This document shows positions 2,231-64,000 of a stretch of 64,000 nt of DNA, in pieces. The stretch lies in NCBI GenBank assembly GCA_050084985.1, contig JBITNC010000001.1, positions 148,800,001-148,864,000 on the forward strand. Reading direction: 5' to 3'. This DNA is from Nageia nagi. Its lineage: Eukaryota; Plantae; Pinophyta. A program made the position numbers and the translations under genes. The notes under the pieces are model-generated. The model was not told the DNA's origin and made no database searches. It was given only the letters and a program-made list of their open reading frames with translations. Position 1 is the stretch's first letter; every line of letters starts with the position of its first letter.

Positions 2231-2548
2231 ATGGACCAGAAGCTGGCAAAATATTTCATTTTACTCAACGAAGAAGCAGAGTCTGCGCGCAAAGGCGCTT
2301 CTTCGGAGGTTTCAGAAATCGTAAGCGATATCACGACGCGCACAGCGGATTTGGTAGAGGAACGAGACATGGCTTTTGCTGTGGCAGCCGTGTTTGCTGA
2401 AGACTCGGGGATTTTAGCTGCTGTCGAAACCATGCTTCCTGCTCGTGACAAGGCCGCTGTCAAAGCTAAAGAAAGTTGCCTTAATTTTCTCTCGGATTTC
2501 ATAAGGCGGATTGGCGAGCGCGTTTTGCCTTATGCCTCACTGGTCAAG
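2231..2548 (+). CDS. PRKDC: DNA-PKcs exon 1 (MDQKLAKY...YASLVK), phase-0 donor
   Basis: ATG at 2231 in aaaaATGG context within the only CpG-rich stretch; donor AAG|gtatga at 2549. Confidence 0.92.
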
Positions 2549-5500
2549 GTATGAAATTATCACTTCAAATTAAATGTGGAAGCCAAATTTTTTAGTAAGT
2601 TGCTCATTTTTTGCATTTCATGGAAATAATGTTGAACGCTGTAAGAATGGAAATTGGATCGCCTGTTTAAGTAGTTTTTTTTCTCCCTCGATGTTTAGTT
2701 ACGTGAAATCTACACTCACACACACACATATCTGAAAATCTAAGTTTCAGCGCTTAGTTATAAGAAATGTTTCTCTTACTGAGCAAGAATTTTTTTACAC
2801 ATACAAAACAAGTCCTTAAGGATGAAAAAAGCATTCTTGCTGAGTAAGGGCAAGCTGAAACTTTGATTTTCAATAATTTTCTTTGTTGGACACATTACAT
2901 TTTGAAAGCAAAAGGTGAACCTAATTTCTTGTAAGTCATGAAAGACTCAGTTTCGTCAAATAATGTGGCAATTTTGGAAATTAAAATTTAAAAAAACTTG
3001 AATCCGACATTTTGGGGCCTGCACAGGAGTATTGAGTGGATATGTGAAGTTCAAAGTTTTGAGCACAGACGAGGATGGTGTAGATGTGTGGAGTTTTGTG
3101 GCTTCTTGGTCCAACAATGATGTTGTGGGTGCTCATTGGAGTCATCATGGGTTCAAAATTTGGAGCATTCTCTTTGGTGGTATTTGTTCGGCTTACTACC
3201 TGGACGCACTATATTGTGTGGCAGAATTGGAGGAAATAGTGTGGCATCTTCTTTCCTTTTTATTATTGCATCTCATATGTTATGGCAATTGCACATTTAT
3301 GGCAATTCAGAATACGAACTTAGAGAGGGCATAACCTTCTGATCCTAGCTATTTTTGATCTTATTCAAAAACTATCTGGAAATGTTGTTTTAAAATGAAT
3401 ACTTGTTTTAACAAAATTTGGAATGGATCTGAAAATCGTGACTCTGTAGTGGCAAATACGTGGATAGATTTGGAATATTGTGATCGGAACAGATAAATTG
3501 TGAGAATGATGATATCATTAGCTTTCCTTGTAATATCATAGACAGAGGGTAATATCATAGATGGTGAGTCGTGATATTGAACATCAGAGTTTTTTTGTTC
3601 TTTTTTAATTTTCTTTGCGACATAGCAAAATCTGAAAGGTTTTCAGCTACATATCCATTCGTCTTCAAACATAGAACACAAAGGGATACTACACATGCCT
3701 CTTCCAAAACATCCAAGGTTGTTATGAGCCTAAACATGAAAAAAGAATATGCAAACAATAGTTTGTAATATGGACCAAAATTTTAATATCTATGAAGGTG
3801 AAAAATGAATTTACAAATTATATTTTGGATTTAATAAAAATTATGAATGTGTTTCCTATAGAGCGGAGAGAACAGAATTAGAGAACTCTGTTCTAGTACA
3901 AACTGGTGTTTCGAAATGATCCCGTAATCTTTTACACTATCTTAAAGATGTTCAGTCTGCTTCAGAGACAAAAGATCTATAGTTGGATCTCGTAGGAGTA
4001 ATCACATATCCTACCTAGTACAAAACAGAAAAACATTCTAGTACTTAAAACATAGTAGTCAAAAAGAGAACAGGCAGAGTATCCTCCGAGACACTTTCAG
4101 AACATAATCTTTCTTTTTTCTTTGGGACCTCCTAGAGATGGCCCCGAGGATCTGCCTCATGATCTCTCTTCTTGCCATCCTCCATGGCATCTTGTAGCTG
4201 CTTTGCTTATAATAAAGAGAGTTGGGTAGGCTTAGTCCACGACTTTAAGAGACTGTTGCCTTGGGAAGTCCAATGAGGGGTTCTCATGATCACCTTAGGA
4301 ATCCTCCACATGGAGGGGGGACTCCCTTCACCAGAGGCTTGGATAATCTTCCTCTTCAAAGGCAAGGGTGGGTTCAAAGAGTTATCCGAGCATAAATCAA
4401 CATGGGCTTTCAATTTACTTTCCTTAACTTCGCTCTTTTAACCATGCTTTGACACATGCAGGATTGACCCTTTATGTCCTAAGGGCATTCCTCCTTCTGC
4501 GTCCAAGGCTCCTGTCTGTCTTTCTGCTTCATCTGCTTCCACCTGATAGGGCGGTGGGGAGTCCTCCACCAATGCTTTAAAGTCCTCATCATCTCGAACA
4601 TCATCCTCTATCTCCAACATCATCCTCTTATGAGCCTTCCCCCTTGTCTGTCAGGTCCAAAGGATTCTCCATAGTCCAAACCCCAGTGAGATACCTGACT
4701 TCCGCTTCTCCGATGGCACAAAAATGAAGAGAACACACAACAGTCCGTGGTGCCATGGGCTTGCCAAGTTATCCTGCTTAAATTCTCTTACAATCTTCTG
4801 TAAATATTTAAAAAGATAACGGGGGATATTGGGCTCCTCTCCCCACCGAAAGATGTTCAAGATGGCCAAATGGAGGATCCAAATTATCAAGACATCATTA
4901 TCCAATGTGTAATATCCCTATTCTGAAATTTTCAAACTCCAGGGCAAAACATAATATTTGTTTGCAAACAAATTATGATTTGCTACAAATAAAATTCTGA
5001 TCTATACTGCGTTACATAAAATTTACTAAAATACCCAAAACTTGAGCCAAATCAATCGATTTTCATTAGATCTGAAAATATATGTAATACAACTTGTATA
5101 TCTACTCACAATAAACTCAAATCTGAAATTACAATGGTTGATATGGATGGATCTGAACACCAAAAGCTGAAATAGGTCCCCAAATGAGATGTTGGGCTCT
5201 TGGAGCTTCCAATCTGCTGCAAATCTGAAAATCTATACTCAAATTCTGCCAAATCTTCTCCTAGATGCTGGGCGTCCATGTAGCCAAGCTCAACTTGTGA
5301 TTAAACACTAAAATTTTCCCTCACAAATGGGGAATCAAATCACAAACTCCCCCAAATTCTGCAATGAATGCTTAAAGATGCTGAAATAAGCCCTGACTGG
5401 CTGAATATCCACAATGATCAATGAAGTCCAATTGTAAACCCTAGGTAGGTTTACCCTCACAAGACAAGGGTTTTCGTCCTTGGCCTTGAAAACCAAGAGG

Positions 5501-8500
5501 GTTTTCTATGATGTCCCCCTTGTATTATTGTACTTGATTTTGGAATTCTATGATTTCCTTTTTGTAACATACTTATTATTATTATGTTATGTTTTAAGTT
5601 AGGACTTGGGATAGAAGAATTAATGGGTCAGTGGACCCCATTGTGAGCCCCAAGTGGGATGTTCCCCTCCCAAGCATAGATTAGGTGTTTAATTATACTT
5701 GGAGATCCTGATCATGATTGTGGGAATCCCAAGGTCTGTTTACAACTTAGATGGATGGATGAGCACTTGTATACATGCGCTAGCCTTGGGGAGACTCCTA
5801 GACTCCCACGTTGGCCCATGATGACACCTAGACCCCATGCATGGCTCCTTGACCCATGTTGGGCATGTGTGGCACTCCTAGACCTCCATGTTGGCATTCA
5901 TGGCACTCTAGACCCCCACGTTGGCATTTATGGCACTCCAGGCCCCATGTTGGCATGCTTGACCCTTAGGCACCCCACGTTGGGCATTCTGGATCCCCAG
6001 GAGGCTAACGCTAGGATTAAGGAGATGGGTGATGACTCCTAGGTGAGATCCAGACATAGTTGAGTGTATTAAGAGGCATTGGAGCCTTGTAGCTAGATAT
6101 ACTTGATTATTATTATTATCTCTTGATACCGTCCAATGGACACAAGTTGTAGTGGTGCTAAGCAATCCCTTAGGTGCAGCTTCTAGGATGGCTTTCAGGC
6201 TAAGGGATCCTGAAGTCTACGACATTGGTGTAGCACCCTTGCCCATCTGGTGGTATTCAAAGGTTGAGCTTCTACCATTCAATTGGTCATCGGGATCAGA
6301 GGAGGGTTCTTTCGATGGAGAGGAATCAGGTTTCGAGGGAGCAAGACTATCCCATCCGTTCGTCTAGCTAGAGGATATTCGTTGTGCCCCAGTTGGCTCC
6401 TTGGAGGCCAACGTCCAGCTCTGGGAGCTTGGTATTGTATCAGTCTGCTTGTTTAATATCATACATATTGCCAGTGGGCATTTGGATCTTATGCTATATG
6501 GTGTTATTGTCCATTATTGCAACGTTGTGGTTTGATTCCTCATTCTTGCATGTATGAGCTAGATGTTGGCATTGCGAGCTTTTAATAATTAATATTGAAT
6601 GATCTTGGCTAGACGTTGGCATATTTGAGTTGTGAATGCATTGTGTGGATGCCCTAGACTATACGTTATGGTTTTTGTAATCGAATTTGCTGATTTGCAC
6701 TTGAGGTTGTGTTTGGGTCTTTACATTTTCATCCTCATGGTTAAACTCAATTGAATTTTCATCCACAAGAGCAACTGTGTTAGCTATGCATCCAAATACA
6801 AGTGAGAGAAGTAAAATTCAATTCCATCATGCCAATAATGAGCCCTTTTAGCCTTTTATATAGGCAAATGTTATATTTCTTTGTTGTTGTGGCACTTTAT
6901 TAAATCACTTAAGTGACTTACCTTATTACTCCTTAAAATAAAATTAAAAGTAATATTATGTCTCTCATAACACAACATTTCCTCTCACACCACACCTTAG
7001 CCAAAATACCTTTATCACACCAAATCTCCACACCACAAATATATACAATAAAATAATGAAAATGGGGACATTACACAATGTGATGTTCTCCATATCACAG
7101 TGACCATCTTCTTCCACTTGGATGAAAGCAAGTTATGGTTGATGCCTCCTTGTAACCTTTGCAACTTGTCATTTTTTCCCTTGAAAATTTGCAGTGCTTG
7201 GACCAGTGAGTGCTTCTCTTGGATGATCTTGTCTCCCTTTAGGGGAAAGCTTGTAACCTTGGCAAGGAGTGTCATATTGATAGTGAATGAAATCCCTTCA
7301 ACTTTTGCACATCTCTTGCTCCACGAGAGCGCCAGGGGCACAACCAAGGTTTGGTTAGCCACCTGGAATCGATTGAGGAAGCCCATCCATCCGACCTGTT
7401 CCAATCATTCCTTATTATCATTGTCCACCATTAACGCCTTAGGCTCCAAAAAATATGAAACATTTGCCATGCTTGTGCTCTTGAAATTTGTTAGTTGCAA
7501 CAAAGATTGAACTAGGTTAGCAAATAATATCCCCATGGTTTGCTCAAAAACAAGGTTCCACAAGGCATCGGGAACGGGGGAACACTTTAGGAACAAAGAA
7601 TTTGTCTAATTTTACTGGGGAATGGGGGAACGTGTTCCCAAGTACTGGGAATGCCTCCTCCAAGGGGGGATTGTGTTCCCATGAAACCTTACTCAAAAAT
7701 ATTTTATGCGAGTTACTATGACTTCCCCAAACATCTCCGTATCATCATAATCCCAACTTGATCCTCTAAAATCCATTTTACACAGATAACTTCACCACCA
7801 TTGGAAGTCATCAATGTTGAAGCATGCACAAGCCTTACCATCATGTCAGCTAGCACTGTCACAACATCCACCAACAAAAGCCCACATAAAAACATGATTA
7901 AATTTTAAAATAAATGGTCCTTGGGCTTCCGCCCCTTCTTCCATCTCCCAAAAGTTTCCAAAAACACTTGATCTCCACTTCCACATCCCACAAAAGGTAG
8001 TGTATATCATCGCTACCTCCAAGCCATACACGGGATTGTCTAGCGTGGGCTCCCATGGTCCACACCAACTCAAAAGCCAAACACTCTCTGTTCTAGCACT
8101 GTTAACACATAAAAGAACCATCAATATAGCCAAAGTGAACTCAGGAAATCCATCTAAGTACAAAATAGGCCTAGAAATGATTACACTTAGCTTTCTTATA
8201 GTGGAACAGGCTAGGAGAGGAGAAAGTTTACAGATAGTTATCTTCCTTGACGACTAATCAATCATTCTTAATCCATTTCTTTAACAAAATGTATAAAATC
8301 CGAAGTCCTAATCAAATCCTAACTGAACTCCTAACTAAATGCTGACTGTCCTTTACTTTAGGAGTTTATTTTGCTAATTTAACTATATCCATGAAGTCCT
8401 AACTGAATGTGCAACTAAATGCTAGTTATTGTTCATAGGAAGTGAATGCGGACTTAGTGTTAACTGATTTCGACTATCACATTTTGGTGTAAAGAATATT

Positions 8501-11500
8501 TAAAGGAGAACAATACAATTCATAACCATTATGAGAGAAAATGGCATTTTTGACGTTATTCCTAGATCATTAATACTTAAGCCAATGGTAATGAATGTCA
8601 TCATATTTAACCCAATTTTATAGGTGTAATAGGAATAGTAAGAGGAAATGTGTAATAGGCTTCGAATTGGTGTATCTCTTGTAAACAAATAGATGATAGA
8701 ACAATTAGTGGATATGACTTTTTGATATTATTCTTAAATTGTTAATATTATAAAGATGGTCATGGATGTTACTAGCTGAGGTATCTTAAATATATATCTA
8801 CAAAACGTCAAGAGGTATCAATTTTGTGGTGCCTGCCGTGCATATCATACCACAAAGAAATAATATAGGCACTTTGAGATTGATACCTCTCAACGTTTTG
8901 TAATTATATATATTTAAGATATGTAAGCTAGTGGGTAAATCAAGGTTAAGTGAATTTATCTAAATTACCACTATCGTCTATACACATTGTTCTAAGTAGG
9001 TCCATCTAGATGAACTCAAAATCAAATTTGTGAAACCTTTATAAAGCATACTCAAATGCTCATTTTAGATACGAGGAAATTTTTTAGGAATTATCATTGT
9101 ATTACAATATCATCTTCTATCATTGTGGTAAGATTGTCAAAAACATTAGAAGGGTCAAAAGTCTATAATGTGAGCCGAATCAAGAGCTTGCACTAGAATG
9201 TTCAATGTTATGGAATCTAGTCCCGAAACATAGAATGTTATGGCACTTAGTCCTAGAACATGCATTGTTTTGGCATCCTAGGCCTAAAACATGGACATTC
9301 TAGTGTTAAGCCTTAATAGTGTTCGTGGTTGAATGAGTTTGTTCTGAAATGTTTGCGCACGTGCCCTAGCATTATTTTGGGCATAATCATCTTCAAGATT
9401 CATTTTTAGAATTATCATTTTTAGGATCATCTTCAAAATCATTATTTCAGAATTATCATTCCAAACTTAGAATCATTAGTCATTTGGTTGTAGTTAGGGC
9501 TCACCCTCCAAAATCACTATTTGTTTGGCAGCTAAGCCTTCAATCCTCCACCTTCAAAACAAGTCTTATGTGTATCGTCTCTTGTGAATTTTCATGATTC
9601 TAATTGCTATATCCTATATTGCATATTGTTGTTACTCTATATTCATTCCATAGACATAATGTGCATGTGTTCATACATTGTTCATTATCTTTGTATCTAC
9701 AATGAGAAATAAAGATGCTCCAAATATGGACTCAACTGTGTTTGGAAAATGTCGATTAGTTAGTTAATTTCTTTCGAATTGGTGGACCTGACTGAAGATG
9801 CTAAGTTAACATCCGTGATCAACTTACTCCACTTAGAGTCTCATCCAGAAGCCACATCGGATGAGGTACAAAGAACAATGATTAGTTGATGACGATGACA
9901 TATGCTAATAACATCATTGGAGGAGATTAGGGGTACGACGAAGTATCATATCCACAACACTCCCATCTCCTCTAATGAATCTAACTCGTGACATGATAGT
10001 TTGGCATGAGAAACTTAAAGACTCACACATAAATTTAGACAGTGAAACAAAAGGTGACACATGTTATACCCATCAACCCTTGATATTAGCCATCACGAGT
10101 TGGAGAGAAATGCTGAATCTTCATGCAATAGGAAAGTTGTGTAGAGCAAAGCCGAGTAGCCATGAAGAACTTAGGCAAGATAGGGTATGCTAGAAGCTTT
10201 TCAAGAAGGGTGGCTTGAAACACTTCTTACGCCATTGCAGGGGTTGTGACCCAAGTGTCTTTGATAAGATTGTTGACGGGTGGAGAGGAAGCTTTGCTTT
10301 GATAGTGTATGTGAGGGTAGACCTGTCAAAAGAAGCGATAGCCGTTGCTCACAAGATGAGCCTGAATGGGGGGTTGTTCAAAAGACACACAAAAGTAACA
10401 GACAAAGAAATCGAGGACTTGTATGGCCTTGGTGAGACCATGGTGAAATCCAAAATTGGAATTGATAGGATGGTGTTGGCAGAATCGGGGGACAAAATGG
10501 CATATTGGGTGATCAAATACTTCACCTTAGATAGTCGATGTTTGGTCATTTTTGGACCTCACTTGGTTTTACTGAGCCATTTCAGATCAGATGGGGGGGG
10601 ATTTTAAATTGTGCATACCCTTCTTCCTCGTCGACTCTCTCAAAACTTGAATTGAGAAGGTGAAAAATGGGGAAGAGGATGAGGTGTGACACCAGGGGTT
10701 AATCACCTACATGTATCAATAGGCCTTGTTGGAGCAACCGGAAGCCCCCATGTCAATGGAGGAACCTGCAACTCAAGCAACAAAACAAAAGAAAAAAGAG
10801 AAAGAAGATTCAAAGAAGAAAGGAGGCATGCAAAAAGGAAAGTCTAAAGAGAACTTGGTTGAATACACTCCCCCAAGCAAGAAGTACCAACTTTCCCAGC
10901 TTGGAGGATCAACCAAGCTAGGAGCACACCGAATGCAGACAAGGGCATCTGCCAAAAAGGTGATATTTAGAACCCTCCACCCAAACTCCCCACTAAAGTG
11001 CTGATTGATGTCAGGAAGGAACAATTGGGAGAGGGAAGTACCCTTGTAATTGAGGAATCTCTCGAGTCCGCCATAGATGAAGCTGAAACATAGTTGACTG
11101 CACCCCTTAGAAGGGAAAAACCCTTGTTGATAAGCCGGCCCCTAGGAAGGAGGACATGGGAACAAAAGGGAAAACCCCTCCCATTGAAGCATCACCCCCA
11201 CTGGGGTAGAGAGGAAAGGAACATATAAGGAATGCATCCAAAAGATGGGTAAAGCCAAAGATTAGGCACAGTCCACCCCCCCTCAAGTATTCGCTAGGAT
11301 ACTTAACAAAGCCAAATGTGATACAATCCCCACCCCTGTTTCTGTGGAAGCAATTGCCACCCCGAATCAAACGGTGGAGAAGAAAATTACAGAAGCCTTT
11401 CCTATTGCATGGGTTAAGGATGAAACCATGTATGCCACAATGAGTCATGCACCCCTGAATCCTGAAGACGAGTTCTTTGTGGCAGCAAGGAACAAATGGT

Positions 11501-14500
11501 GAAGAATTGTCAAAGAGGCGGCAAAACAGTTGGAATAGATGGACAAGGTCATCAAAAGGAAGCTGTGAAGAATCGATTGCAGTAGTACCTACTAACTAGT
11601 ATGCTTGGTAGTAATAGGAAGAAATATAGGTAGCTATAATCTCTGTTTTAGATGGTGAATAGGAAACATGTAATGAAAACAGTTCTAGTTGTGTTTTGAT
11701 TGCAGTTTCAATGACTTGTATCTACTTACAGGTATAGCTGGGTAGCCAGTTTCAATAGAAACCAATTTTGTGACTGGTTTTGGGATCCAACAAAAACCTG
11801 CTGCTTTTTTGTTAATATAATTTACCTATTAGCAAAAAACTACCCTTAGTTATGGAAAAGCCTTTTTATGTAGGCCAAAGACAAGCAAAATTATTATGCC
11901 ACATTGTCAATAATTCACCACTTTTATTACATTGGATAAGATTTTCAGATAGAAAGGCAAAAAGTGGGAAGCAACAAAGGTTTTGTCAACTGTTAACAAA
12001 TTTTAGGGATGCCAAACCAACAATTGAAGATTGGCAATTGTTGATGAGTGGAACTAATGTCTCGTTGGATATAAATACAAGGATTTTGATGAATTTATTC
12101 ATTTATTCTAAACAAATGACAGTGTTCATAATCATATTAGAAGAAATAATATGGATTGAAAGAACCTATTACATGTAGCATTGTAACTAGGGCATGGAGC
12201 TATAATCATGGAGGAGGTGATGATGAACAATTAGAAGTTGAGTTATGATTGCTATGGGTTCAACTTCTAGCTTATGGATAGAATCTTGAGTGGTGAATGG
12301 TGTACTTGGATATATTCAAACATTTTCAATAAACTAGGATCAAAATCTCTAGAGCCTTCAACAAATGTAATGCTTGAATTTGATAAATATTCAAAATTAT
12401 ATTTGCATGAATTATTTTTGAATGCTATAGAACCTATTGAAAGGGGTTGAACAAGACAATTCGGGTATGACAGCATGCAAGTCACAAGATTTAACTTTCA
12501 ACAAGGCAACAATAGATATAGGCTCCATATAAAACAAGCTTTAACTTTTGTGGAAATAAAAGGTGACAAGTTATTAGATAGTTTGAAAATTTCACCTCCA
12601 CTCACTTGCGATCGATATGAAAATTTAAAATCTGGAAAAGGAGTTGCAAGAAGGAAGGATAAGGAAAGATAGACCTAAAATTTTAGAGTATTAATAATGG
12701 GCATTGAAAATTTCATGGATCAAATGCACTTTCCAAGAGTGGTATTACTCAAATAACTATTTTCTGAAGTTTACATATAATGTTTAATAATTAATAATGA
12801 TATGTTAATCTTTTACTTTTTTTAAGATCTTGGGAAATTAAAAAAAAATTGTTATTTTTGTGTACTCTAATATAGTTTGTTTGTTTTGGAAGTAAATCGT
12901 ATAAAAATTATTTAATTCTAGATACATGATATAAAGGAAGAATACATTCTTGAATTACTAAAAATTAGAATAAAAGTTAGGTCTGCAATTGCTATTAAGA
13001 TAGATATCTAATGCATATATGTTAAAAACATAAATGCCAGGACGTATCAATCTCGATCCAATATAGTGGGTAAACACCTCTTGTATAGTTTACAGTTTAC
13101 ACATGATTCTTATCTCTTCTTCAAATGAGGTGGAAGCTTTGATATTAAAACCATGTTAAAAGTTTAGGTGAGGTACTAAGGACGAATGCAATAATTCAAG
13201 TCTGTTTAATGCTCTTGAATTCATATTTTGATTTTTTTGTTGATCCTCAACTGTGAGACCACTCTTTTCCACAAAATTATGTTCACCTTCTTTTCTTTTG
13301 TTGAAGTTTTTTTCTTGGGAATTGTTATCAAGTCATTTTCTTGGCCCTGTTGCATGTTGATTTTACCTCGTTTAGTTCATCAAAGCCCTGTGCTAAATTT
13401 TGAGACGTGATTTTTATTTGAACTTAAAAAGTTGATTGTTGTTTTTGGACAGGTTAAATGCATTGGTATTTTCAGGAGAGAAGATTCAAGGACAGTGCAA
13501 GCTGCTGCACTGAATCCATTGCTCACAATAATGGAATTAAGCCTGCAGGAGAGTATAGCTCTTGACTTTTCACTGGATTGGACATGTGTAGAGATGTTGC
13601 TGATGGAGTATAGGAAAGCAAGGACGTCTGGCACATGTATTTATATTCTTTTCATATGCACAAATACTTAAGAATATCATGACATTGAAATTTAATTTAA
13701 AAGAAGAAACAAAAGAGGTTCTTTTTTCTTGTTCCCATGTATCAGTAGGCATAAAACAAACTTTTATCAGATCCTCTGGCTTTTGTTAGACATGGACATC
13801 AATTGCATGATTGTGGCACATTGGGAAACTAAGCTTGACTTTCTTTCTTTGCATGATAAAATGAATTGCATCATAAGCTCCATCTGAAATATAATGTTTA
13901 GACATGCCTATATGATATAAGATAACATTAGGTTTAACTTGCCTTCTTTCTAACATAATCTATCTCTTCCATATTTTATATGCTTCATTATCTACCTACT
14001 TAAACAAACCTGCTATTTAAATCATTATCTGACTTCCATTTGCACATACATTGGTTAATGTTCAAGTTCATTAACGACATCATTATTTATTTCTTCCCTT
14101 AAAAAGATTTGGTCTGTAGGTACAGCCAACCCAACCAGAAATTTTTTGTTATCTACTTTATTGCCAGTAAACATTTAATGTTATTTATATGTTTGAAGCT
14201 CTCAGCTAGCTACATGTCCCTTCACAAAGTAAAACCTGTAAATTTGATCAGTGTCTTTGTTTCCTTGAAAAAATTGTTCATCTTGTGAATGAATTTATTT
14301 ATTTTTCCTGTAGTGAGGGCACACATTTTGATGGTAATTGGCTATGGGGTTGAAAAGTTTCCTAAGTTGTTTCAAGAAGAGAATTTGGACATCATCGTGA
14401 ACCTATGCCTTGATGCTTTGGAGGAGGAACTTCATCGAACAGGAAATAATCCAGTTTATGTGCTGGTCACAGGAGCCATTAAGTGTTTGGATTCGTTACT

Positions 14501-17119
14501 TTGTTGGTTTGATAGGACAATGCCTGCAGGAGGTACCTTATAAATCTTATTATGGTTTTTACCTGTGTGGTTTCTTTCAGACTTTATATACACAACTCAG
14601 TTATTATATATTTCTATATTATTTTTTGGTAGCATATTGGAGGTTAATGCAATTGTTTTCTAATTTTATTTTCATTAATTCTTGAGATAGAGACGGCAAA
14701 ATTAGTCTTTCATAACCAAGTTTCATTCTTGTGTAGGATACATAGAAACTGCGAGGAAAGTATATGCATATGTTGAACAGGTCATACATTTTCGAGAGGA
14801 CTTGAAGCGATATGAGATGGTCAAAGGTAAGCACCACTTCAGTATTGGGGAAAGATTAATATTGTTGGATTTCAGGTGGGCTGTGAGTCCATATATTGCA
14901 CAAATCACATTTCCTTTGAAATTGAACAGTTTGGCATATGATGGTTATACATTTTTTGCCTTCATAGGGATGCTAATTCAAATTACTGGAATTTGCATGC
15001 ACTTTGTTTGTAAAGATTTTTAGGGGCCTATCTGAAGTCCATAATACACAGGAATGTGTGTTATTAGGAACCTTGTAAACATTATGCACCAATGGAAGTT
15101 GCTGGTAGAGCTTGAACAAGGCAATCTACTTTGCATTGTTAATTGTTTTGGGTTCAACAAGGCTAGTTTCATATTGAGTAGATCCAAGGCTGGGTAAGTG
15201 ACTTTGCATGATAATTACATTTAATTTTGTAGTCAATTTATGCTACCTCATTTTGTTTCTAGCTAGATATTACTGCTCAAAATGCAACTTTTAGGGGAGT
15301 TCTCTAGAGAAGATAATTTGGAGATTCATATATGGCATAATCTCCAGGTCAAGTTCTCAAATGAAAAAGAGTTTGATGAAATTGGAAATTAATTACCTAA
15401 CTGAAAGCTCACAATCTTAGCCTAGATGTATCTTTGGGCTATACTACTGAATCTTAGCTTTGAAGTTCATATTGAATTCTTGTGGACGAGTCTAGTGGTA
15501 GGCCCTTGTTTGTAGAAGTGGATAATCCAACATGTATAGGTCAGGATCATAACCTACTGTGGTAGAATGGGCAGGAGCCATTGTAATGTTGTCATCAGAG
15601 GAAGTTTGTTTTTAAATAAATAAAAATGTCTGTTGTGATAAAAATATATAGCCACATATATAGTACAATATTAATTTAAAAATATTAAAAATACAACTGT
15701 AGAAAATATAAAAAATAAAACATTATATTTGCTAACATTATAACTCAATAACATAATTTAATTAAAATAAATAAAATTTTAAAAATTATTATTATTAATA
15801 TTAACAAGAAGAAGAAGATTAAAGTACATAACAATTTATTGAAAACAAACCAAAGATATAGATAAGATTATTGAGTTATCCACCCAAATAACTTAAATAG
15901 GCATCTTAATTTGATCTCTCTGCATTTGCCAGATTATGTATTTAGTATATCTTATCTATTGTAGATGATGCTATAGCTTTCTTGTAACATGATTTACATT
16001 TTTTTTACCTATATGTGTGACGACATTGGTCTTGTGTGGAATGCCTAGCATCTAGTGCATGAGTTGAAAACCTTTGGGAATCCAATTCAAAAGGCTTAAA
16101 GACAATATAGTCTGCACTTCAAGTTTAGCCTCACTTTAAATGTTTTTTAGACTGAAAAGTCACTATGACAGATCTGAACAGAGTGGTTTTATTTTAAGCA
16201 TTTACATTATGATTGTTTCTTTTCTCTTAGTTGAATGATTCCAAGAAGCAATTCCTGAGTCTTGTGATGGTTTTCTCTTCTGATCTCATGGAAATGATTA
16301 ACCTTGATAATGGGTCTTTCATTTTGTCATAAACAATATATATCTTGGATCTAATAATCCTTTCTATGTTCATCCCAGTTTATCACTGTGGATTGTTTTA
16401 GCTCATATTGCAGCACTTTTTAAGCATTCAAAGAAAGAATCTAGATTAATGATGTGAAGAGAGTTGATGTGCACATAGCAATAAAGAAGTAACAATATGT
16501 CTTTGGGTGAGATATTTCATTGGAAGGGTACAATTCTATATAATTTGAGGTATATTTTGAAGTAAAGCTTTTCTGTGCCACAGTCCATAATTATTACTTC
16601 ATATGTCTTGTTTAAACATGTGCTGCTGAGATCAGCGGGTCTGAAGCTTCTTTTACATCATGCAAGGCTATTTCGTTTGCGTCTTCTGGAAAACTCTATT
16701 GTCATACTCAAATGGCTACAGTCATATTGGTCAGTAAAGCATTCTCTTTTGTTTCTCGTCTTTCTTATAGCAATTATGTGCATACACCCACCTCTTATGA
16801 TAAAAACTCTTTGCTGTTTGCAGCATACATAGTAATGCACAGCTGAGAGATGCTGCCTTTCCAGCATTTGAGCAATTTATCTCAGAAGTAAGGGTGACCA
16901 TGATCTTTCAATTTTGACATATATTCACAGATGTTTGCTTGGTCGAGTTCATTTGTATTCACTATTCTTGTTTGTAATATTGATTCTTTGAATAAATTTT
17001 TATAAGGGAAAGATAATTTGTTCTGTTGTGGAGACCATATCTTTTGTTGGTCTAGTTGGTTCTTGTGCTTTATTCAAGTTCATTCCTAAATTGTCTAAAA
17101 TGGATTTCCGATCCCTTTA

Positions 17120-17176
<57 letters not shown>

Positions 17177-47100: not shown

Positions 47101-50100
47101 CCTGAATACAGATGGCTTTTTTGATTTTGTCCTGAGAGAAAGCCTATGGGATATAGAGCTGCAAAATAGATAGTAGACGTGGTGCATTGGGGAAAGTCAG
47201 AACAAAGGATTTGGAAGAGACTGGACTGGTTCCTATTAGGGGATGAATTGCTGGACAATTGTTGGGGCACAAAAACCTCTATCCCAGAAAATTGAAGGAC
47301 AGATAACTGTCCAGTGGTATTGGAATTTGACGTGAATCCTAAAATGTCATGTTCTTGTTTTGTTTTTAAATTGTAGATTCTATTCATATATCCATTATGA
47401 GATAAAAGCATAGGAAAGATAAAAAGGAATCATACTATAATTGTTCCAAGCGTTCTACCTTAATTGATAAGAACCCTTATTAATGGACATGAATCCTTTT
47501 TTTAAAAGATTTTGTTCATATTTCCTTAAATAAATCAAGAGCATAGGGATGGTAAAAGAAGTTACACAGTAACATGTGCTCTTGCTTCTTGCAATCTTTC
47601 AAAAACGTTCTCAATTTGCCCCAAATGATTTTTCTTCTTTCTATATATACAAAAATCATCTAGAAAAACTCTAATGAATATTCCAATATAAGGCTCAAAA
47701 CCTCTATTCATTAGTCTCTGAAATATAGCATGTGCATTACACAATCCAAAGGGCATTACTTGGTAAGTAAACATACCCCATGGAGTGGTGTAAGTTGTCT
47801 TCAATTGATCCTTCTCTACTATCCAAACTTGGTTATATCCACTATAACCATTTGCAAAACTATATCAATCATATCCAACAACTTCATCCAAAATTTGATC
47901 TAAAAAAGGAAGAGGATAATGATCTTTCTTTGTGAATATATTCAACTTTCAATAATCCACACATATTCTTATCTTCCCATTCTTCTTTCTAGATACCACA
48001 ATAGGAGAAACCCATTCTGAATTATCTACAAGAAAGATAAATCCTACATCTAAGAGCTTTTGTATTTCCTCCTTTATACCTTTAGAGGAATTTGGATTCA
48101 TCCTATCGGGCATCTGTTTAATGGGATTAATATTATCCATCAATTCAATTGAATGTTCTATCCATGTTACTTGTTTTAAATCCTTATAATCAAAGGTGAA
48201 GAGATGGATATACCTCCAGAAAAGCTAAAAATACTCTTCTTTATCATTTTCTTCAATAGCATCCCCAAATCCTAGTTGCATCAGAAGATGCTCCACTTCT
48301 TCCTCTATAAAGTGCATAGCAGATTCAGCAGGTGGAGTTGGCAATATATCCATCACAGAGATATCAACATCCTCCTCATATTCAGTATGCACATCAGTGG
48401 TACTTGTATAACCTGAGCATGTCCACTCTTCACTTAGGTAAGATTTCCATAGCAGAGAACGTAAACCCCATATTTTTATCACAGAAGATTTAAAACATCA
48501 TAAGGTATAGGTTGTTTTTGATAGGATACTAGAGCATATGGGAAATTGCTGAGGTATACCAGTGTCAATTTTTTCAAATTAGTTTGTACTTTGTATGTAT
48601 GCACAAATGTTTCACTTAAGAAAAGGAGATGTTCTTTGAATGTGCAAAGGCTAGTAGAGATGGTCAAAGTAAGGCTCATAGATGGTTCAGCAATTTCACT
48701 GTTAAATTGTTTAAATTTTTTGTCAAATCCAGATGGAAGAGGAACTTGTCCTTGTTTGTTTCTGAGATTAGATTCTTTCATAGTATTCTGGAGCAGTTTA
48801 AGCAATCAGATCCTATCATATAAGGCTTGAACTGTTTCACTTTGGGTGAAGGATTTGTTATTTCATAGGTATGATTGGAATGCATAGCATAAGTTACTAT
48901 TCAAGCTTCTACTGGCAATTCTTTGATGAACTTGTTTAACTGTTGCTGTCAGATTCAGAATTTTTACAAAGCAAATGCAAGGATAGTACAACAAAGTGCT
49001 TTATACTTTCTACGCCTAAGTGAAAATCTTGTTTCCTTTGATACTTGTAAGTTTGTCAAAATTAACAATAATATTATTTTCTATTAATGCGGTTCAAATG
49101 GTTTTATATTGCAGCTTGGTCATCTCTAGAGAGGGTAATGGAACAAGTTGATGAAAGGGAATCTGGGGCACCTTTGTGGAAGCATTATGTGGAGCTTTGG
49201 TCCCAGCTAATGTCCTTCTCCACAGACAGAGACAGACATGTAAAGAAAGTTAGTGAGAAAGAGAATATCCCTGATACCAAATCTGGGGAAACTGTCGGTG
49301 GAAACAAAAAAGATGCAGAATTGCAGGCATCTGTTTTTGATTGTTTAGTCAGATCCACTATGAAGGCAATTGCAGAGCTTAATTTGAAATATAGGGTGAA
49401 AAGTTTACATGTGCAGGCATCTGACAATTCAACCGAGGAACAAGGTTTTACTACTGTTCACTTTTTCTGAAGTGTGTGCATGATTTTATATTCACACTTC
49501 CTTTGTCTGTACATAACTTGTCTTCATTTAAAGTTAAAAAATATGGTGCCTATACAGCTATAGGAGGTTTTCTTAAAGCATTATTGAAGAGGGTATTCCA
49601 TTTGGTTTGCAGATAAATTGTCTTCTTAATGGTGCCTCAAGTTGTTTTATTTCAATGGTTTCACTTCTTAAGAAGTAATTATGTTCACTGTTATTTATGA
49701 ACAAACATTCATACAAGCATAAAACTTGGAACTCTTATAAAAGTTTAGATTTCAACATGTAAAAAGAACATAACTCGTTCATTCAGCTTTTTTGTAGAGT
49801 TGAATAACTACCGTTGATGTGAAATCAAATATTTGTAACTACAGCCACCCTTGGGAGATTTTGGTAAGGAAATTTCATTGTGTAAACATTAGAAATGTAC
49901 AACAAGAATGCCAATTTGTTTGAAAATGAAAAGCAACAACTTCACACATTAATTGTGAATACCTAAGGGGATTGACAACAAAGGACAACCATACAAAGAT
50001 GGCTTTCTACTTCATTCATGATACCTTGAATTTTTCGGGGACTCCCATTGACAGAGTATGAGTTGCCTAGGACTTGTCTTTGATTGTCCTACGCATTACT

Positions 50101-53100: not shown

Positions 53101-56100
53101 GTGTTTATCCATGCTCAAGTGTCATCTAGGTGCTATACAAGCCTTGGGTATCCCACAATCATCTTTTATGATCTCCAAGTGTATTAATGACAAGTAAAAT
53201 AACATATCCTAGCTTGGGAGCAAAACATCCCTCATGGGGTTCACAAAGTGGGTCCAACGGACCTTTATAATTCTATCCCAAGTAACTAACAACAAATACA
53301 TGAGTAAATAAATATTTACAAAAAGGGAATCCTTACGATTCCAAACTTAATTATTTTTTTACAAAAAGGGGATCTTACAAAGCCTCCCCTCTCGAATTGC
53401 TTGCCCTCAAGCAATTGTAAAATGCCAAGAATCATTATCTTCCAAACATCCCTTCAATAATTCTCCTCCATAACTCAGCCCATGAAGTCCTTGTATTAAT
53501 CTTTGGAGTTCTTCTTTGGTGTGTAGACGTTGCATGCAAAAATTTTGATATTTTTGCCAAAGTCTATTCTATCTTTGGCAATCTACATTAAGTACAAAAA
53601 TGACTTCAAATATTTTGGTACAATAATCCTTAGGAGACACAAGGATGCATGCGAAGATTCTGAGGTACTCATCCATCCTAAGCACCTAATTACAGTAGTG
53701 AGCTTTTGGAAGAACCTTTAAAAATATACCGGCAAAAACATAAAAACGAGCAAGCATGAGTGAGAAAAAGTGGAGCTTTTGCATCATAATTGATGCCAAG
53801 ACTTCCCCAAGCTCAATGTTGGGTGCCAAGCTCCTTCTATATCCAACTTTGGGTGCCAATTCTCCTTTTTGCCCAACATAGGATGCCATAGTCTTTTCTT
53901 GCCCAATGTTAGTTGCTTAGACTCCTTGATGCTCAACATGGGGTGCCAAACCTCTTCCTTGTCCAATGTTGGGTGCCAAGCCTGCTTCATGTCCAATGTG
54001 GGGTGCTAGACTTCCTCTTTACGCAACGTCAGGTGCTGAGACCTCTTCATGATCAATGTGGGATGTCGAATCTCCTCCGTGCTTGACGTGAGATGCCAAT
54101 ACCCCTCCATGTCCAACGTGGCATGCTAAGTCTCCTCCTTGCCCAATGTTAGGTGCCAAGGCCCCTCCAAGTCCAACGTGGGGTGCCAAATCTCCTCCTT
54201 GCGCAATGTTATGTGCCAAGGTCCCTCCAAGTGCAACGTGGGGTGCCAAATCTCTTCATTGCCCAACGTTAGGTGCCAAGGCCCCGCCAAGTCCAATGTG
54301 GGATTCCAAATGGCCTCCTTGCCCAACGTTAGCTCATTTTTCTTCTCCTCTTTCTCATCGATGAGATCACTTCCAGATTCTTATTGGTGACTTGTGGGCA
54401 TTCGTCCTTGATTACTTGCAGAGTATGAGTTTACTATCAATATCAAAGCTCATAGTTATAGTTAGATTTCTGTAATAGGTGCGAATGTCACCCAATTCAA
54501 ACAGCCATTGCATACCCAAGATAATGTGGGGATGCCATTTGAGTGGATACACATAAAAGTTTTCTCTAATCGTGTGACTTTGCAATCTCACTCCAAATCT
54601 CTTCATGATTTGGTCTACTAATGTGAGTTTTCCATTGGCATTGAAAGCTTTGAATCCTTCGAACCCTTTGGTTTTGAGTCCCTTCTTCTCCACAAAATCT
54701 CCATCAATAAAATTATGAGAAGCACCAAGGTCTATTAAGACCATTACTCCATCCTTAGCACAATTTACTCCAACAATTTGGACATCATTAGAGTCTTCAT
54801 CCATCTAATGTACATCTACAATTTCAGTCACCTGCTAAAGGAGCTTCATTCTTTGTATCATTTGTTAAGGGGGCTCCTGTATCTTGCATACCTACATCCT
54901 CTTCCTATGATAGATAGACCTTATCAACTTTCTCACCACTTTGTACGTCTGATTCGACATCATCATCATCCTCTCCAACTTCCAAGTTTGACTCTTCATT
55001 ATCATCTCCAAAGGATGAGGAAGCGATAGAGGAACTAGAAATGCGTTGCAAGGGAGGCACGTTTTCTCTTCTAATATGAAGGCGTAGAGGCTTATGTGGA
55101 GGACTGCTTGGCTCTTTCACTAGAGAGATTACAAAACAACTCCCTTTAGGATACACTGCAACTTGCTCAAGCATGCATAAGGGAACATTATCATAAGCTG
55201 CCTCGTTAAGATCAACAACTTCCTTGCTGATTCTTACCACATTCGCCTTCACCTTTGCTTTAGAAGTGCCCATAGTAGCTTGTTGCCCAATTGTCCCTTG
55301 CCTTTTCCCAAGAGAGGATAAGGAAGGCTTTTCAACCAAAGGAGGAGTTTCATCAGTGTTAATAGGAGACTTTCTGATTCTCACAGGAACTTCCTTGGGT
55401 ACTTCAATCTTTTGCTTAGTGAATTTCATCCTCTTTTCTACTGAAGACTCTTGAACATTGGGTTTATCTATACTCTTCTTGCCAACTTTGAGAGGGCTTT
55501 GTTCTTGTTCAATGCTGCATAGATATCATCCATCTTTTTCTTATCCCATATATTCGTATATCTTTTTACAGTGCCTAGAGACTTGTGTTTGTAAGTTATA
55601 TGTTTAGCAAAAGTAGTGCTATAGAAGGTTGCCATGACACCCCTTAGATCATAATTCTTGGCTGCTACTTCTCTTTAGAAAGTATGTTGTAGCTCTTTTC
55701 TCATGCTTTTTGTCTCTACCCATGTTTGACAAACATATCAAGAAATAGCAACAAGTAGGTTGAAAGTAGCATCTTTCTTTCTCCACACCTTTTCTTTCAA
55801 AAACAACAACTTCATGGCAAATTCCATAAGGACTAGGTGATCACTGGCATACCTGGGTAGCAGTAGAGGCTGCTTTTAGAGCCATAGACTCTAATGTATG
55901 TATGCTCTGAATACTGTAGATAAAAATTAGCATGCCCACATATAGCTTGAATGGTAGAATCAAAGATCCTTTTCACTATAGATCCCCCTTTTAACTCTTT
56001 GTAAATGGCATATTCCTATTCATCATTTCTCATGTAGAAATGTATGAATTTGTTATGATACCACCATTTTGGATACACATTCCAGATTGGGATGCCCTTC

Positions 56101-62100: not shown

Positions 62101-63082
62101 CAAAACATCCCTACAAACAATAATCTTATTAGTGGATACATCTTGCGACTGGCAAGCTTTTAACTACTCACTACAATCAGCAATGAAATATGCTTGCAAT
62201 TTGCATTTACCTTGAACCTTATTGTTAGGAAATAAAGCATATTCTACTGAACCAGAAACAGGAAGGGTTAATCATCTTGGGCTTACTTCCTGACCATACT
62301 TCGTCTTCAAGAGTGACATCCTTCAATGGATCTGGATACAACTAACCAGGTAAACTGCCATATATACGTTTGCTTAATGCTTTCATGGCACTCCAAAGGC
62401 TATTTAGCATACCTGCCCATGTCAACAATTGTGCTATTCATACTTTCAGCCATCCCATTTGGAGTGTGGTGTGCAAACAGGACACATCCTTCAAATCCCA
62501 AACTGTTTGTTCTGCTTTTTGAATTTTCAACTTAATAAAATACCAGAACATCACTCTACTAATGAGCTACTGTCCCTCTTATGGGTTCGGTTTTATTATG
62601 ACTGTGATTTGCTTCTCCAAAATAAGTGTGACTTTATATTGAATGCTTATTTCAGTGGTTTCATTTTTTCACGTTGTGTGAACTTGCATTTGATATCCTT
62701 TCTCATATGTGCAGTCTGCTCTCTGTCTATTATGTGGCAACCATGTCTTGTCTTGGAACATTATGCTTGTATGAAAGTTCTTAAGAAAAGCAAGATATTT
62801 GTGATGTAAAGATTACATTTTTTCTTCATCCTACCAACCGTTTTAGTTGGAGTGTAAAGCAGATTCAGAAGCTGATCCATGGGCAAGCGAAGCTGAAGTG
62901 GAATTCATTGAGCCATTAGATCCTTTACAGATGAGAAAGTTTCTGAATTTGGTGAGTTCATTGTCACTTGAAGTTGAAGGTGTAACTGGTGCAAGGACAG
63001 TTAGGTGTCCTAACCATTTTCTGATGATATGCTTGAATTGTTGGCTTTAACAGGTGGAATTTGTCCAAGAATTGTTGTCTGG
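2231..63082 (+). CDS. PRKDC: DNA-dependent protein kinase catalytic subunit (DNA-PKcs), 5' portion: 13 exons, ~635 aa of the N-HEAT region, 3'-incomplete
   Basis: GT-AG exons join in frame: 2231-2548, 13453-13636, 14314-14532, 14737-14826, 16636-16729, 16824-16887, 30342-30401, 30523-30698, 32053-32170, 32301-32436, 49115-49444, 62863(or 62847)-62951, 63054-63082. Peptides match remembered human DNA-PKcs motifs in order: CLNFLSDFIRRIGERVLPYASLVK ~ [47 protein letters not shown] ~ [42 protein letters not shown] ~ CAHTNVELKKAALSALESF; PLWKHYVELWSQLMS ~ PTYKDYVDLFRHLLS; FLNLVEFVQELL ~ FINLVEFCREIL. Confidence 0.92.
4908..7075 (-). mobile_element. Solo LTR, family C copy 1 (~0.94 kb net), containing nested solo LTR A1
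   Basis: Termini TGTAAT...ATTACA; perfect TSD CAATG (4903-4907 / 7076-7080); minus-strand TATA-like motif near 6855. Confidence 0.85.
5507..6725 (+). mobile_element. Solo LTR, family A copy 1 (Gypsy)
   Basis: T(A)TGATG...TTACA; perfect TSD TTTTC (5502-5506 / 6726-6730); similar to copies at 23122, 25383 and 51990; internal ~30-bp CCCACGTTGG subrepeats. Confidence 0.85.
7551..7691. mobile_element. hAT-type MITE (141 bp)
   Basis: TIRs CAAGGTTCCA / TGAAACCTTA; perfect 8-bp TSD CTCAAAAA (7543-7550 / 7692-7699); repeated GGGAAC subterminal motifs. Confidence 0.8.
8771..8932. repeat. Foldback inverted repeat with ~63-bp arms
   Basis: ACTAGCT..ATCTTAAATATATAT..CAAAACGT..AGAGGTATCAAT..GTGCCT pairs with AGGCAC..ATTGATACCTCT..ACGTTTTG..ATATATATTTAAGAT..AGCTAGT. 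Confidence 0.8.
8933..9500 (-). repeat. Dispersed repeat family E, copy 1
   Basis: Reverse complement of the block GTTCACCTAGGTGGA...CACTTAA..TTGATTTACCC, with ~30-bp subrepeats also seen at ~28530 and ~60200. Confidence 0.65.
10120..11840 (+). mobile_element. Degenerate retroelement (family F copy 2): accessory ORF followed by LINE-like A-rich 3' end
   Basis: LKHFLRHCRGCD...VIKYFTLDSRCLVIFGPHLVLLSHFR...HQGLI followed by a low-complexity charged tail; ends AATATAATTTACCTATTAGCAAAAAA. Confidence 0.55.
11841..12480 (+). pseudogene. PIF1-type helicase fragment (Helitron or PIF1-carrying transposon remnant)
   Basis: LPLVMEKPFY...QQRFCQLLTNFRDAKPTIEDWQLLM, plus frameshifted IHLF and NG-x-LG-like motifs. 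Confidence 0.65.
13453..13636 (+). CDS. PRKDC: DNA-PKcs exon 2 (VKCIGIFRREDSRTVQAAALNPL...ARTSGT)
   Basis: Acceptor ggacag|GTT; donor T|gtattt (phase 1); resembles human [23 protein letters not shown]. Confidence 0.88.
14314..14532 (+). CDS. PRKDC: DNA-PKcs exon 3 (LRAHILMVIG...GAIKCLDSLLCWFDRTMPAG)
   Basis: Acceptor ctgtag|TG; donor G|gtacct; resembles human GCLKGLSSLLCNFTKSM. Confidence 0.9.
14737..14826 (+). CDS. PRKDC: DNA-PKcs exon 4 ([30 protein letters not shown])
   Basis: Acceptor gtgtag|GA; donor G|gtaagc; contains DLKRY motif. Confidence 0.92.
16636..16729 (+). CDS. PRKDC: DNA-PKcs exon 5 ([31 protein letters not shown])
   Basis: Acceptor atcag|CG; donor TG|gtcagt (phase 2). Confidence 0.9.
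16824..16887 (+). CDS. PRKDC: DNA-PKcs exon 6 ([22 protein letters not shown])
   Basis: Acceptor ttgcag|C; donor GAA|gtaagg (phase 0). Confidence 0.9.
17121..17175. repeat. Compound microsatellite (GT)7(AT)~20
   Basis: Direct reading. Confidence 0.95.
18340..18863 (+). pseudogene. Ty1/Copia RT-RNaseH 3' fragment; continues at 25293-25370
   Basis: Frameshifted GGVVSW, ALSTTKAKFMA, AFHCKTNHI, YHFIIDMVE, NVADLVTKS motifs; resumes after the B1 insertion with KGLVAS and PPT CAAGTGGGAGAT|TG. Confidence 0.85.
19670..19830 (+). repeat. Tandem minisatellite, ~8 x 19-21 bp (AAAAAACTCATGATTTCAC)
   Basis: Direct reading; lies inside LTR B1. Confidence 0.85.
21059..23118 (-). mobile_element. Solo LTR, family B copy 2 (inverted, ~2.06 kb, shorter than B1)
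   Basis: Ends are reverse complements of B1 ends; TSD ATATA/ATATT; internal ~185-bp GCGCCTA-containing repeats. Confidence 0.8.
23122..24484 (+). mobile_element. Solo LTR, family A copy 2
   Basis: T(T)TAAC...ATTACA; TSD TAATA (21052-21056 / 24485-24489) once B2 is removed. Confidence 0.8.
25383..26626 (-). mobile_element. Solo LTR, family A copy 3, flanked by a ~311-bp direct duplication
   Basis: TGTGATG...CATCACA; 25068-25378 repeated at 26627-26937. Confidence 0.8.
26930..27214 (+). mobile_element. Probable 3' LTR of the Copia remnant (~285 bp)
   Basis: Follows PPT AAGTGGGAGAT; imperfect inverted termini TGTTGTATCA...TGATGCTACA. Confidence 0.55.
27402..27483 (+). repeat. Perfect 41-bp tandem duplication
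   Basis: CACCTATGGACGAAGCATATGGAATATAACATGATGAACAA x2. Confidence 0.9.
28530..29170 (+). repeat. Dispersed repeat family E, copy 2
   Basis: Shares GATAATTTTGAAGAT, GCTAGAATGTTGGG subrepeats and GTTCACCTAGGTGGA with copies 1 and 3. Confidence 0.65.
29820..30285 (+). pseudogene. Ty3/Gypsy reverse-transcriptase fragment
   Basis: KKDGMLRLCIYY..IKNNYPFPGINELLDEL..YFSKL..HYEFV..MNDIF..LDKLVVIFLD. Confidence 0.85.
30342..30401 (+). CDS. PRKDC: DNA-PKcs exon 7 (IVICIVSDDHRVKNPQQIYM)
   Basis: Acceptor gccag|ATA; donor ATG|gtgaga; phase 0/0 and about the length needed to fill the alignment gap; weak sequence similarity. Confidence 0.75.
30523..30698 (+). CDS. PRKDC: DNA-PKcs exon 8 (KIFSDALGVLDSPGTDPKLTSLAILTMGKL...GGSFH)
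   Basis: Acceptor caacag|AAA; donor AG|gtttat (phase 2); resembles human KELSIAIRGYGLF. Confidence 0.85.
32053..32170 (+). CDS. PRKDC: DNA-PKcs exon 9 (RDHNG...FADMVVYLDNVENYVVSLLAK)
   Basis: Acceptor ttgcag|A; donor AAG|gtttca; resembles human VASVLLYLDTVPE. Confidence 0.88.
32301..32436 (+). CDS. PRKDC: DNA-PKcs exon 10 (AVGNTFHGFPYLFPKQR...VFLNNI)
   Basis: Acceptor ttgcag|GCT; donor G|gtagta; resembles human IDSFPQYSPKMQ. Confidence 0.9.
32564..32668 (+). repeat. 53-bp tandem duplication
   Basis: ATGATTATTTTGAAGAATGCATATGAAGAATCATTGTTTCCATCAATGGATA x2. Confidence 0.9.
34130..35630 (+). repeat. Array of ~50-bp hairpin units in D1
   Basis: Repeated GTCGCATG-TTTT-N-GAGTCCTTTTGCAC-N-AAAA-GGTGCGAC palindromic units. 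Confidence 0.75.
35685..39244 (+). pseudogene. Degenerate ~1,180-codon ORF of element D1 (unknown retroelement accessory protein)
   Basis: Begins MASNIRAPP; blocks CGLFNVAMMPFVVPFPDLC, FYMNSYLVYLLLH and YIRVYG..LLPRYASDRLILMEFARQ are conserved in D2; acidic/Ser-rich middle, helical C-terminus; multiple stops and frameshifts. Confidence 0.7.
41058..41245 (+). repeat. Imperfect ~97-bp tandem duplication
   Basis: AATGTCAGGAT..GGTCATATTTCAGAGTT..CCTTCAGCTA..AAACCAATCTTTTGCA x2. Confidence 0.75.
42197..45229 (+). mobile_element. LTR family B copy 3 (5' terminus eroded)
   Basis: AAATACAAGATTTTGGGGACCCTATTTTTG start; TATAAATAG near 44303; ends GAGGAAAGATTTCCATCCCAAC. Confidence 0.75.
45255..46433 (-). 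mobile_element. Solo LTR, family C-like (1.18 kb)
   Basis: TGTAATG...GGGGACATTACA; degenerate TSD GGCCT/GGTGT; minus-strand TATA near 45960. Confidence 0.65.
47560..48230 (-). pseudogene. Ty3/Gypsy reverse-transcriptase fragment
   Basis: KEEIQKLLDVGFI..SEWVSPIVVSRKKNGKIRICVDY..KTTYTTPWGMFTYQVMPFGLCNA..VFLDDF. Confidence 0.9.
49115..49444 (+). CDS. PRKDC: DNA-PKcs exon 11 (AWSSLERVM...LWKHYVELWSQLMS...VFDCLVRSTMKAIAELNLKY...EEQ)
   Basis: Acceptor ttgcag|CT (phase 1); donor G|gtttta at 49445, with an alternative AGG|gtgaaa at 49396; resembles human LYDEFVKSVLKIVEKLDL. Confidence 0.85.
50030..50816 (+). pseudogene. LINE fragment: ORF1 end plus APE-endonuclease N-half
   Basis: FVDEDLT (ORF1-like); LWNCN..IKTH..SGMVFLV..CYFP..SPYLNL..GKIML, which continues as T-(G>S)DFN at 59051 after D2. 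Confidence 0.7.
51990..54750 (-). mobile_element. Truncated non-autonomous Gypsy element: protease, 30-bp tandem array, PPT and family-A 3' LTR (51990-53379)
   Basis: VLIDLGASHNFID...HIILGMQWL protease; PPT GAGAGGGGAGGC next to LTR TGTAAG; no RT or integrase core. Confidence 0.8.
53800..54332. repeat. Tandem array of ~30-bp units (CCAACGTGGGGTGCCAAATCTCCTCCTTG-like, ~17 copies)
   Basis: Direct reading; 60-bp higher-order periodicity. Confidence 0.85.
57250..58900. repeat. Hairpin-unit array in D2
   Basis: About 12 units with GAGT(G/C)CTTTT(G/T)CAC loops and GCGCAC/GTCGCA...GTGC arms. Confidence 0.7.
59051..59770 (+). pseudogene. LINE endonuclease C-half remnant
   Basis: xDFN, YG.., ILNG, SVVDYIL motifs, frameshifted. 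Confidence 0.6.
60200..60900 (+). repeat. Dispersed repeat family E, copy 3
   Basis: Same blocks as copies 1 and 2. Confidence 0.65.
62847..62951 (+). CDS. PRKDC: DNA-PKcs exon 12 (...DSEADPWASEAEVEFIEPLDPLQMRKFLNL); 5' edge ambiguous, 62847 or 62863
   Basis: Donor TTG|gtgagt; acceptors ttttag|TTG (phase 0) or aagcag|AT (phase 1); resembles human LHPAKPKDFSAFINL. Confidence 0.8.
63054..63082 (+). CDS. PRKDC: DNA-PKcs exon 13, 29-nt micro-exon (VEFVQELLSG)
   Basis: Acceptor taacag|GTG; donor GG|gtgagt; resembles human VEFCREILP. Confidence 0.85.
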
Positions 63083-63990: not shown

Positions 63991-64000
63991 ATACTATACC

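Follow-up and report, generated by a model that had tools for sequence, protein, structure and literature searches.

Thirteen small exons spread over 61 kb probably encode the N-terminal HEAT-repeat arm of a plant DNA-PKcs

The window, by which we mean the whole stretch of 64,000 nucleotides that was analysed, carries on its plus strand what we consider, at a probability of about 0.85, to be the first 13 exons of a DNA-PKcs gene, the encoded piece being the N-terminal HEAT-repeat arm of the protein (DNA-PKcs_N). This portion represents ~16% of the DNA-PKcs coding sequence; the remaining ~3,400 codons, which would include the CC1-2/forehead, CC3 (NUC194), CC5, FAT, kinase and FATC exons, probably follow downstream over several hundred kb, and extrapolation from 636 codons in 61 kb gives ~0.4 Mb for the whole gene. 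DNA-PKcs of gymnosperms is already known from published work, and the present find is in this respect correct but ordinary.

Exon structure of the gene start

Splice sites were set from the reading frame in combination with homology, and queries were compared exon by exon, not as a joined product. Using this approach, we determined that positions 2231-63082 of the plus strand hold 13 exons with a summed length of 1,907 nt (635.7 codons), which reproduces the start, the end, the exon number and the length (~635 amino acids) given in a preliminary description. The exons are listed below in window coordinates; residue numbers and identities refer to the Cryptomeria japonica protein LOC131027990 isoform X1 (P0035) and, where indicated, to Ginkgo biloba Gb_14398 (P0001), and a slash within a donor site marks the exon end.

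2231-2548 (+): exon 1, coding part; 106 codons from the ATG; donor AAG/GTATGA; 63% identity to Cryptomeria residues 1-106 and 60% to Ginkgo
13453-13636 (+): exon 2; 184 nt, phase 0 to 1; 47/60 residues identical to Cryptomeria 108-167 and 45/60 to Ginkgo
14314-14532 (+): exon 3; 219 nt, phase 1 to 1; 61/72 residues identical to Cryptomeria 169-240
14737-14826 (+): exon 4; 90 nt, phase 1 to 1; donor AAG/GTAAGC; 24/28 residues identical to Cryptomeria 243-270
16636-16729 (+): exon 5; 94 nt, phase 1 to 2; 25/30 residues identical to Cryptomeria 272-301
16824-16887 (+): exon 6; 64 nt, phase 2 to 0; donor GAA/GTAAGG; 18/20 residues identical to Cryptomeria 304-323
30342-30401 (+): exon 7; 60 nt (20 codons), phase 0 to 0; 12/19 residues identical to Cryptomeria 324-342
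30523-30698 (+): exon 8; 176 nt, phase 0 to 2; 51/58 residues identical to Cryptomeria 344-401
32053-32170 (+): exon 9; 118 nt, phase 2 to 0; 32/39 residues identical to Cryptomeria 403-441
32301-32436 (+): exon 10; 136 nt, phase 0 to 1; 35/45 residues identical to Cryptomeria 442-486
49115-49444 (+): exon 11; 330 nt, phase 1 to 1; donor CAAG/GTTTTA; 68/109 residues identical to Cryptomeria 488-597
62863-62951 (+): exon 12; 89 nt, phase 1 to 0; donor TTG/GTGAGT; 21/27 residues identical to Cryptomeria 601-627
63054-63082 (+): exon 13, a micro-exon; 29 nt, VEFVQELLS plus 2 bases; donor TGG/GTGAGT; 9/9 residues identical to Cryptomeria 628-636

GT-AG borders were found at 12/12 complete introns, together with a GT at the start of intron 13, which exits at the window end; the phases chain unbroken over 12/12 junctions, and 0 stops occur in the 13 exons. 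At most splice sites, the open frame closes a few bases away. Seven split codons were compared by eye with Cryptomeria and specify the same or a similar residue (among them Cys at exons 5/6, Arg at 8/9 and Asp at 11/12); the codon split over exons 5/6 is TGC, as in the orthologues, and that over exons 11/12 is GAT, as in Cryptomeria. The ATG at 2231 is the first ATG downstream of an in-frame stop and coincides in the alignment with Met1 ('MDQKL') of the orthologues from liverwort, fern and conifer.

For the junction of exons 11 and 12, donors at 49402 and 49410 and an acceptor at 62847 were dropped in favour of 49444/62863, because the Cryptomeria protein runs on after 'KYRVK', through 'SLQVHELGNSAREQ'. 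A search by homology and reading frame revealed no exon 14 between exon 13 and base 64000. Exons of 29 nt, such as exon 13, are easily lost by automatic annotation.

Homology searches with the individual exons

Among six plus-strand frames compared with Pfam, three gave a match, and in each case to DNA-PKcs_N (PF20500) alone. These frames correspond to exons 1, 3 and 11, and they fall on the profile at rising positions, namely 2-57 for the frame starting at 2231 (E 7e-4), 119-188 for that at 14289 and 461-546 for that at 49087. Each match scores 14-18 bits, under the PF20500 cut-off of 26.1 bits; three separate exons lying in collinear order on one Pfam family nevertheless do not look like the product of chance. 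When the frame at 2231 was searched against PDB sequences, the top matches were six human DNA-PKcs entries, with query residues 47-105 on human 51-107, although the E value (0.085) is marginal. The corresponding single-exon PDB searches with exons 3 and 11 gave no DNA-PKcs match. Because the per-exon Pfam scores are below the gathering threshold and the PDB matches are marginal or blank, the link to DNA-PKcs rests on the plant orthologues.

These orthologues were reached from several directions. A phmmer search of 1.84 billion representative proteins with exon 1 returned 18 matches, and all named ones, Ginkgo Gb_14398 aside, are DNA-PKcs or are annotated with a DNA-PKcs N-terminal domain. The Ginkgo protein (197 aa; 60% identity, E 2e-34) itself matches Pfam DNA-PKcs_N. 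A second, length-filtered homologue search with exon 1 gave no match, an effect of the filter, the Ginkgo protein being 1.86 times as long as the query. Other exon 1 matches include Adiantum capillus-veneris P0002 (763 aa), an N-terminal fragment from Chara braunii (P0017) and Riccia sorocarpa P0005, a protein of 4,062 aa in which DNA-PKcs_N, CC1-2, CC3, CC5, FAT, PI3_PI4_kinase and FATC are all present. On PF20500, P0005 reaches 277 bits, and the collinear comparison proteins lie at 276-277 bits.

A profile in which the window exons stood as separate, unjoined rows retrieved the Cryptomeria protein P0035, a RefSeq entry of 792 aa for which PF20500 is listed in a precomputed table. A homologue search with Riccia residues 1-700 returned full-length bryophyte and Selaginella proteins only, with no seed-plant protein among them. 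Using local tblastn, we then compared P0035 with the window and obtained collinear plus-strand matches with E values of 1e-35 to 5e-08 (0.007 for exon 7), and zero matches on the minus strand, a pattern well beyond chance. All 13 exons are contiguous on residues 1-636 of P0035 and on residues 1-637 of P0005.

The degeneracy of HEAT repeats and the sub-threshold Pfam scores of single exons could favour assignment to another HEAT protein of the TOR, ATR, ATM, SMG1 or huntingtin type. We reject this assignment: the named matches are all DNA-PKcs, and the collinearity runs residue for residue from Met1 to 636. Exon-by-exon searches gave no TOR-, ATR-, SMG1- or huntingtin-type match to the window exons, and ATM and SMG1 surfaced in the profile search only, where they were drawn in by the kinase end of the Riccia sequence rather than by window exons. 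The preliminary description had named the gene DNA-PKcs, with a DNA-PKcs N-terminal domain as the expected best match and a better match to another HEAT protein as the outcome that would speak against it. Its naming of the gene is supported by exon-by-exon searches that yield DNA-PKcs only, by PF20500 standing alone for three exons, by the collinear orthologues in Cryptomeria, Ginkgo and Riccia, and by the lack of any such better match among TOR, ATR, SMG1 and huntingtin.

Conservation and state of the coding sequence

Identities summed by exon over the window gene are as follows.

Cryptomeria: 75.6% (470/622)
Ginkgo: 65.7% (109/166, exons 1-2 only)
Adiantum: 52%
Riccia: about 51%
Selaginella: 48%
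Ceratodon: 45.5%
Chara: 38%

Over residues 1-167, identity is 68.7% between the window and Cryptomeria, 65.7% between the window and Ginkgo and 68.3% between Cryptomeria and Ginkgo, with ferns at ~52%. The distances in this segment point to a split within seed plants about as deep as that between Ginkgo and Cupressales, and the lineage is accordingly neither of these two.

Six land-plant orthologues share 120 invariant alignment columns, 113 of which are retained in the window. When Cryptomeria was left out, 144 columns were invariant in the five remaining orthologues, and the window retains 118 and Cryptomeria 120 of them. Because these two counts are so close, the window copy is constrained as strongly as the RefSeq Cryptomeria gene, with no sign of decay in codons 1-636. 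Over these codons the coding sequence is intact, with no stops, GT-AG introns and in-phase junctions. The earlier description of the gene as intact thus applies to the first 636 codons, both in the absence of stops and in the constraint kept, the remainder of the gene lying past base 64000.

A truncated or decaying gene, in which the N-terminal exons are clean and the kinase part has been lost or broken, would leave no functional DNA-PKcs. Gymnosperm genomes contain many gene fragments, the closest annotated models end at 763-795 aa, and the part with the kinase is outside the window; all three would suit such a locus. Against it stand the 13 exons without stop or frameshift, the splice sites, which are all intact, and a constraint at invariant sites equal to that of the Cryptomeria gene. 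Moreover, full-length DNA-PKcs transcripts, in which FAT, PI3K-like kinase and FATC are present, have been described for Pinus flexilis and Sequoia sempervirens, and split annotation is a known artefact (PMC10419180). We therefore regard truncation as quite improbable and retain the reading of the 13 exons as the start of a DNA-PKcs gene.

Five small public runs, none of them on record as RNA, share 5-17% of the words of positions 14200-16900. The best of them (X1, 65 million letters) contains 17% of the sampled words, and the exon share of the same interval is 17% (467/2,701 nt). The X1 word share would fit a cDNA or exon-capture library from the same or a very close species, an agreement that is suggestive only.

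Annotated models that end at a common motif

Three independently annotated models that cover the N-terminal part only end directly past the same conserved '...GLRYP' motif, two of them with short non-homologous tails. The motif lies ~150 codons downstream of the last exon in the window. The three models are as follows.

Cryptomeria isoform X1 (P0035): 792 aa
Adiantum capillus-veneris (P0002): 763 aa
Riccia fluitans (P0033): 795 aa

The coincidence of a conifer, a fern and a liverwort model at one motif could be taken to mean that the locus also, or only, makes an N-HEAT-only protein of ~790 aa, conserved across land plants, which would end after the GLRYP exon through early polyadenylation or a retained intron. 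However, a shared intron that is non-canonical or giant and defeats gene callers would give the same pattern, and the full-length models of Riccia sorocarpa, Marchantia, Ceratodon and Selaginella run past the GLRYP point. A short product of the locus at hand is in our estimation highly improbable, and that land-plant DNA-PKcs loci generally may yield a conserved stand-alone N-HEAT protein of ~790 aa is a proposition to which we give very little credence.

Introns, composition and intronic elements

The introns range from 94 to 16,678 nt and sum to 58.9 kb. The window is AT-rich (GC 0.32-0.42), with a series of short open frames on the plus strand, and the GC content is 0.42 in exons versus 0.27-0.40 in introns. 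Pfam comparison revealed retroelement debris, antisense to the gene, in the long introns.

47565-47804 (-): reverse transcriptase fragment (RVT_1), intron 10; E 1e-9
54415-54804 (-): retroviral-type aspartyl protease fragment (RVP_2), intron 11; E 8e-8

An ORF of 174 aa at 54908-55429 (-), adjoining the RVP_2 fragment, gave no Pfam match. Within intron 10, overlapping ORFs of 110-170 aa at 37281-39076 (+) are rich in Ser, Glu and Asp and likewise have no Pfam match. An intron 6 ORF at 17056-17373 (+), 'CVCVYIYIYIYIYIYIYI', marks a TG/TA-type dinucleotide microsatellite. Rfam comparison of positions 1-15700 and 15850-64000 gave no family above gathering scores. Introns of 10-17 kb with retroelement debris fit a gymnosperm, which is the most likely source. 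A flowering plant that has retained DNA-PKcs, in contradiction to the reported loss of the gene in all angiosperms, might be considered because over residues 1-167 the window is about as far from Cryptomeria as from Ginkgo, and the gene tree by itself does not place it within the gymnosperms. In view of the introns, and of genome and transcriptome searches that gave no angiosperm DNA-PKcs (PMC10419180), we hold this reading to be very improbable.

Comparison with published DNA-PKcs genes

DNA-PKcs has been described in chlorophytes, charophytes, bryophytes, lycophytes and Acrogymnospermae, but not in Magnoliopsida (Lees-Miller et al. 2021; PMC8021618). According to a later survey, conifers, cycads and Ginkgo carry it, as do the three genera of gnetophytes (Kumar 2023; PMC10419180), and genome and transcriptome searches gave no DNA-PKcs in basal angiosperms, monocots or dicots (PMC10419180). 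The statement in the preliminary description that the gene is absent from most flowering plants and reported from some non-angiosperm plants agrees with both studies (PMC8021618, PMC10419180).

The gymnosperm genes described in PMC10419180 represent this gene in the plant group to which the window most likely belongs, and like the window gene they consist of numerous short exons set apart by very long introns. Their lengths are about 107 kb in Gnetum, 306 kb in Taxus, 504 kb in Pinus taeda and 794 kb in Cycas (PMC10419180). The extrapolation to ~0.4 Mb falls within this range of 107-794 kb, and the last three lengths match the several hundred kb that had been suggested for the present gene. 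That annotation often misses or splits the plant DNA-PKcs gene is stressed in the same study (PMC10419180), in line with the earlier remark that such a gene is easily missed. Compared with those gymnosperm genes (PMC10419180), the window shows exons 1-13 only, at 76% identity to Cryptomeria and 66% to Ginkgo.

Cryptomeria LOC131027990 X1 is the closest named sequence, with 470/622 residues identical. Unlike the window gene, it is annotated as 'uncharacterized', and its model is N-terminal only and ends at 792 aa. The amino-acid divergence of 24% between the two marks a deeply separated lineage.

Full-length plant orthologues carry all domains of human DNA-PKcs (PMC10419180). The human protein (PRKDC; PDB 7k17, 5luq) belongs to the same Pfam N-terminal family, with exon 1 falling on human residues 51-107. 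The N-terminal arm is very divergent between human and plants, and single exons therefore match marginally or not at all.

Predicted function

In human cells, Ku70/80 loads on a DNA end and recruits DNA-PKcs. The DNA is held by the cradle together with the HEAT arm at the N-terminus, the PI3K-like kinase is turned on, and the enzyme phosphorylates itself and its partners, which are Artemis and XRCC4/Lig4. The plant protein, ~4,000 aa in full, would by analogy act likewise: Ku70/80 would bring it to DNA breaks, the N-terminal arm would contribute to holding the DNA, and the C-terminal PI3K-like kinase would go on to modify both itself and further end-joining factors by phosphorylation. No functional study of any plant DNA-PKcs was found in the literature searched. 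Judging from orthology, we infer that the gene is probably expressed and working in end joining.

Implications

If the 13 exons are indeed the start of a DNA-PKcs gene, this genome retains the gene for the Ku/DNA-PK end-joining kinase that flowering plants lost, a feature with a bearing on break repair in gymnosperms and on genome editing in conifers. The practical value lies in a clean map of exons 1-13, which may serve as a seed for full manual annotation of the gene in the assembly.
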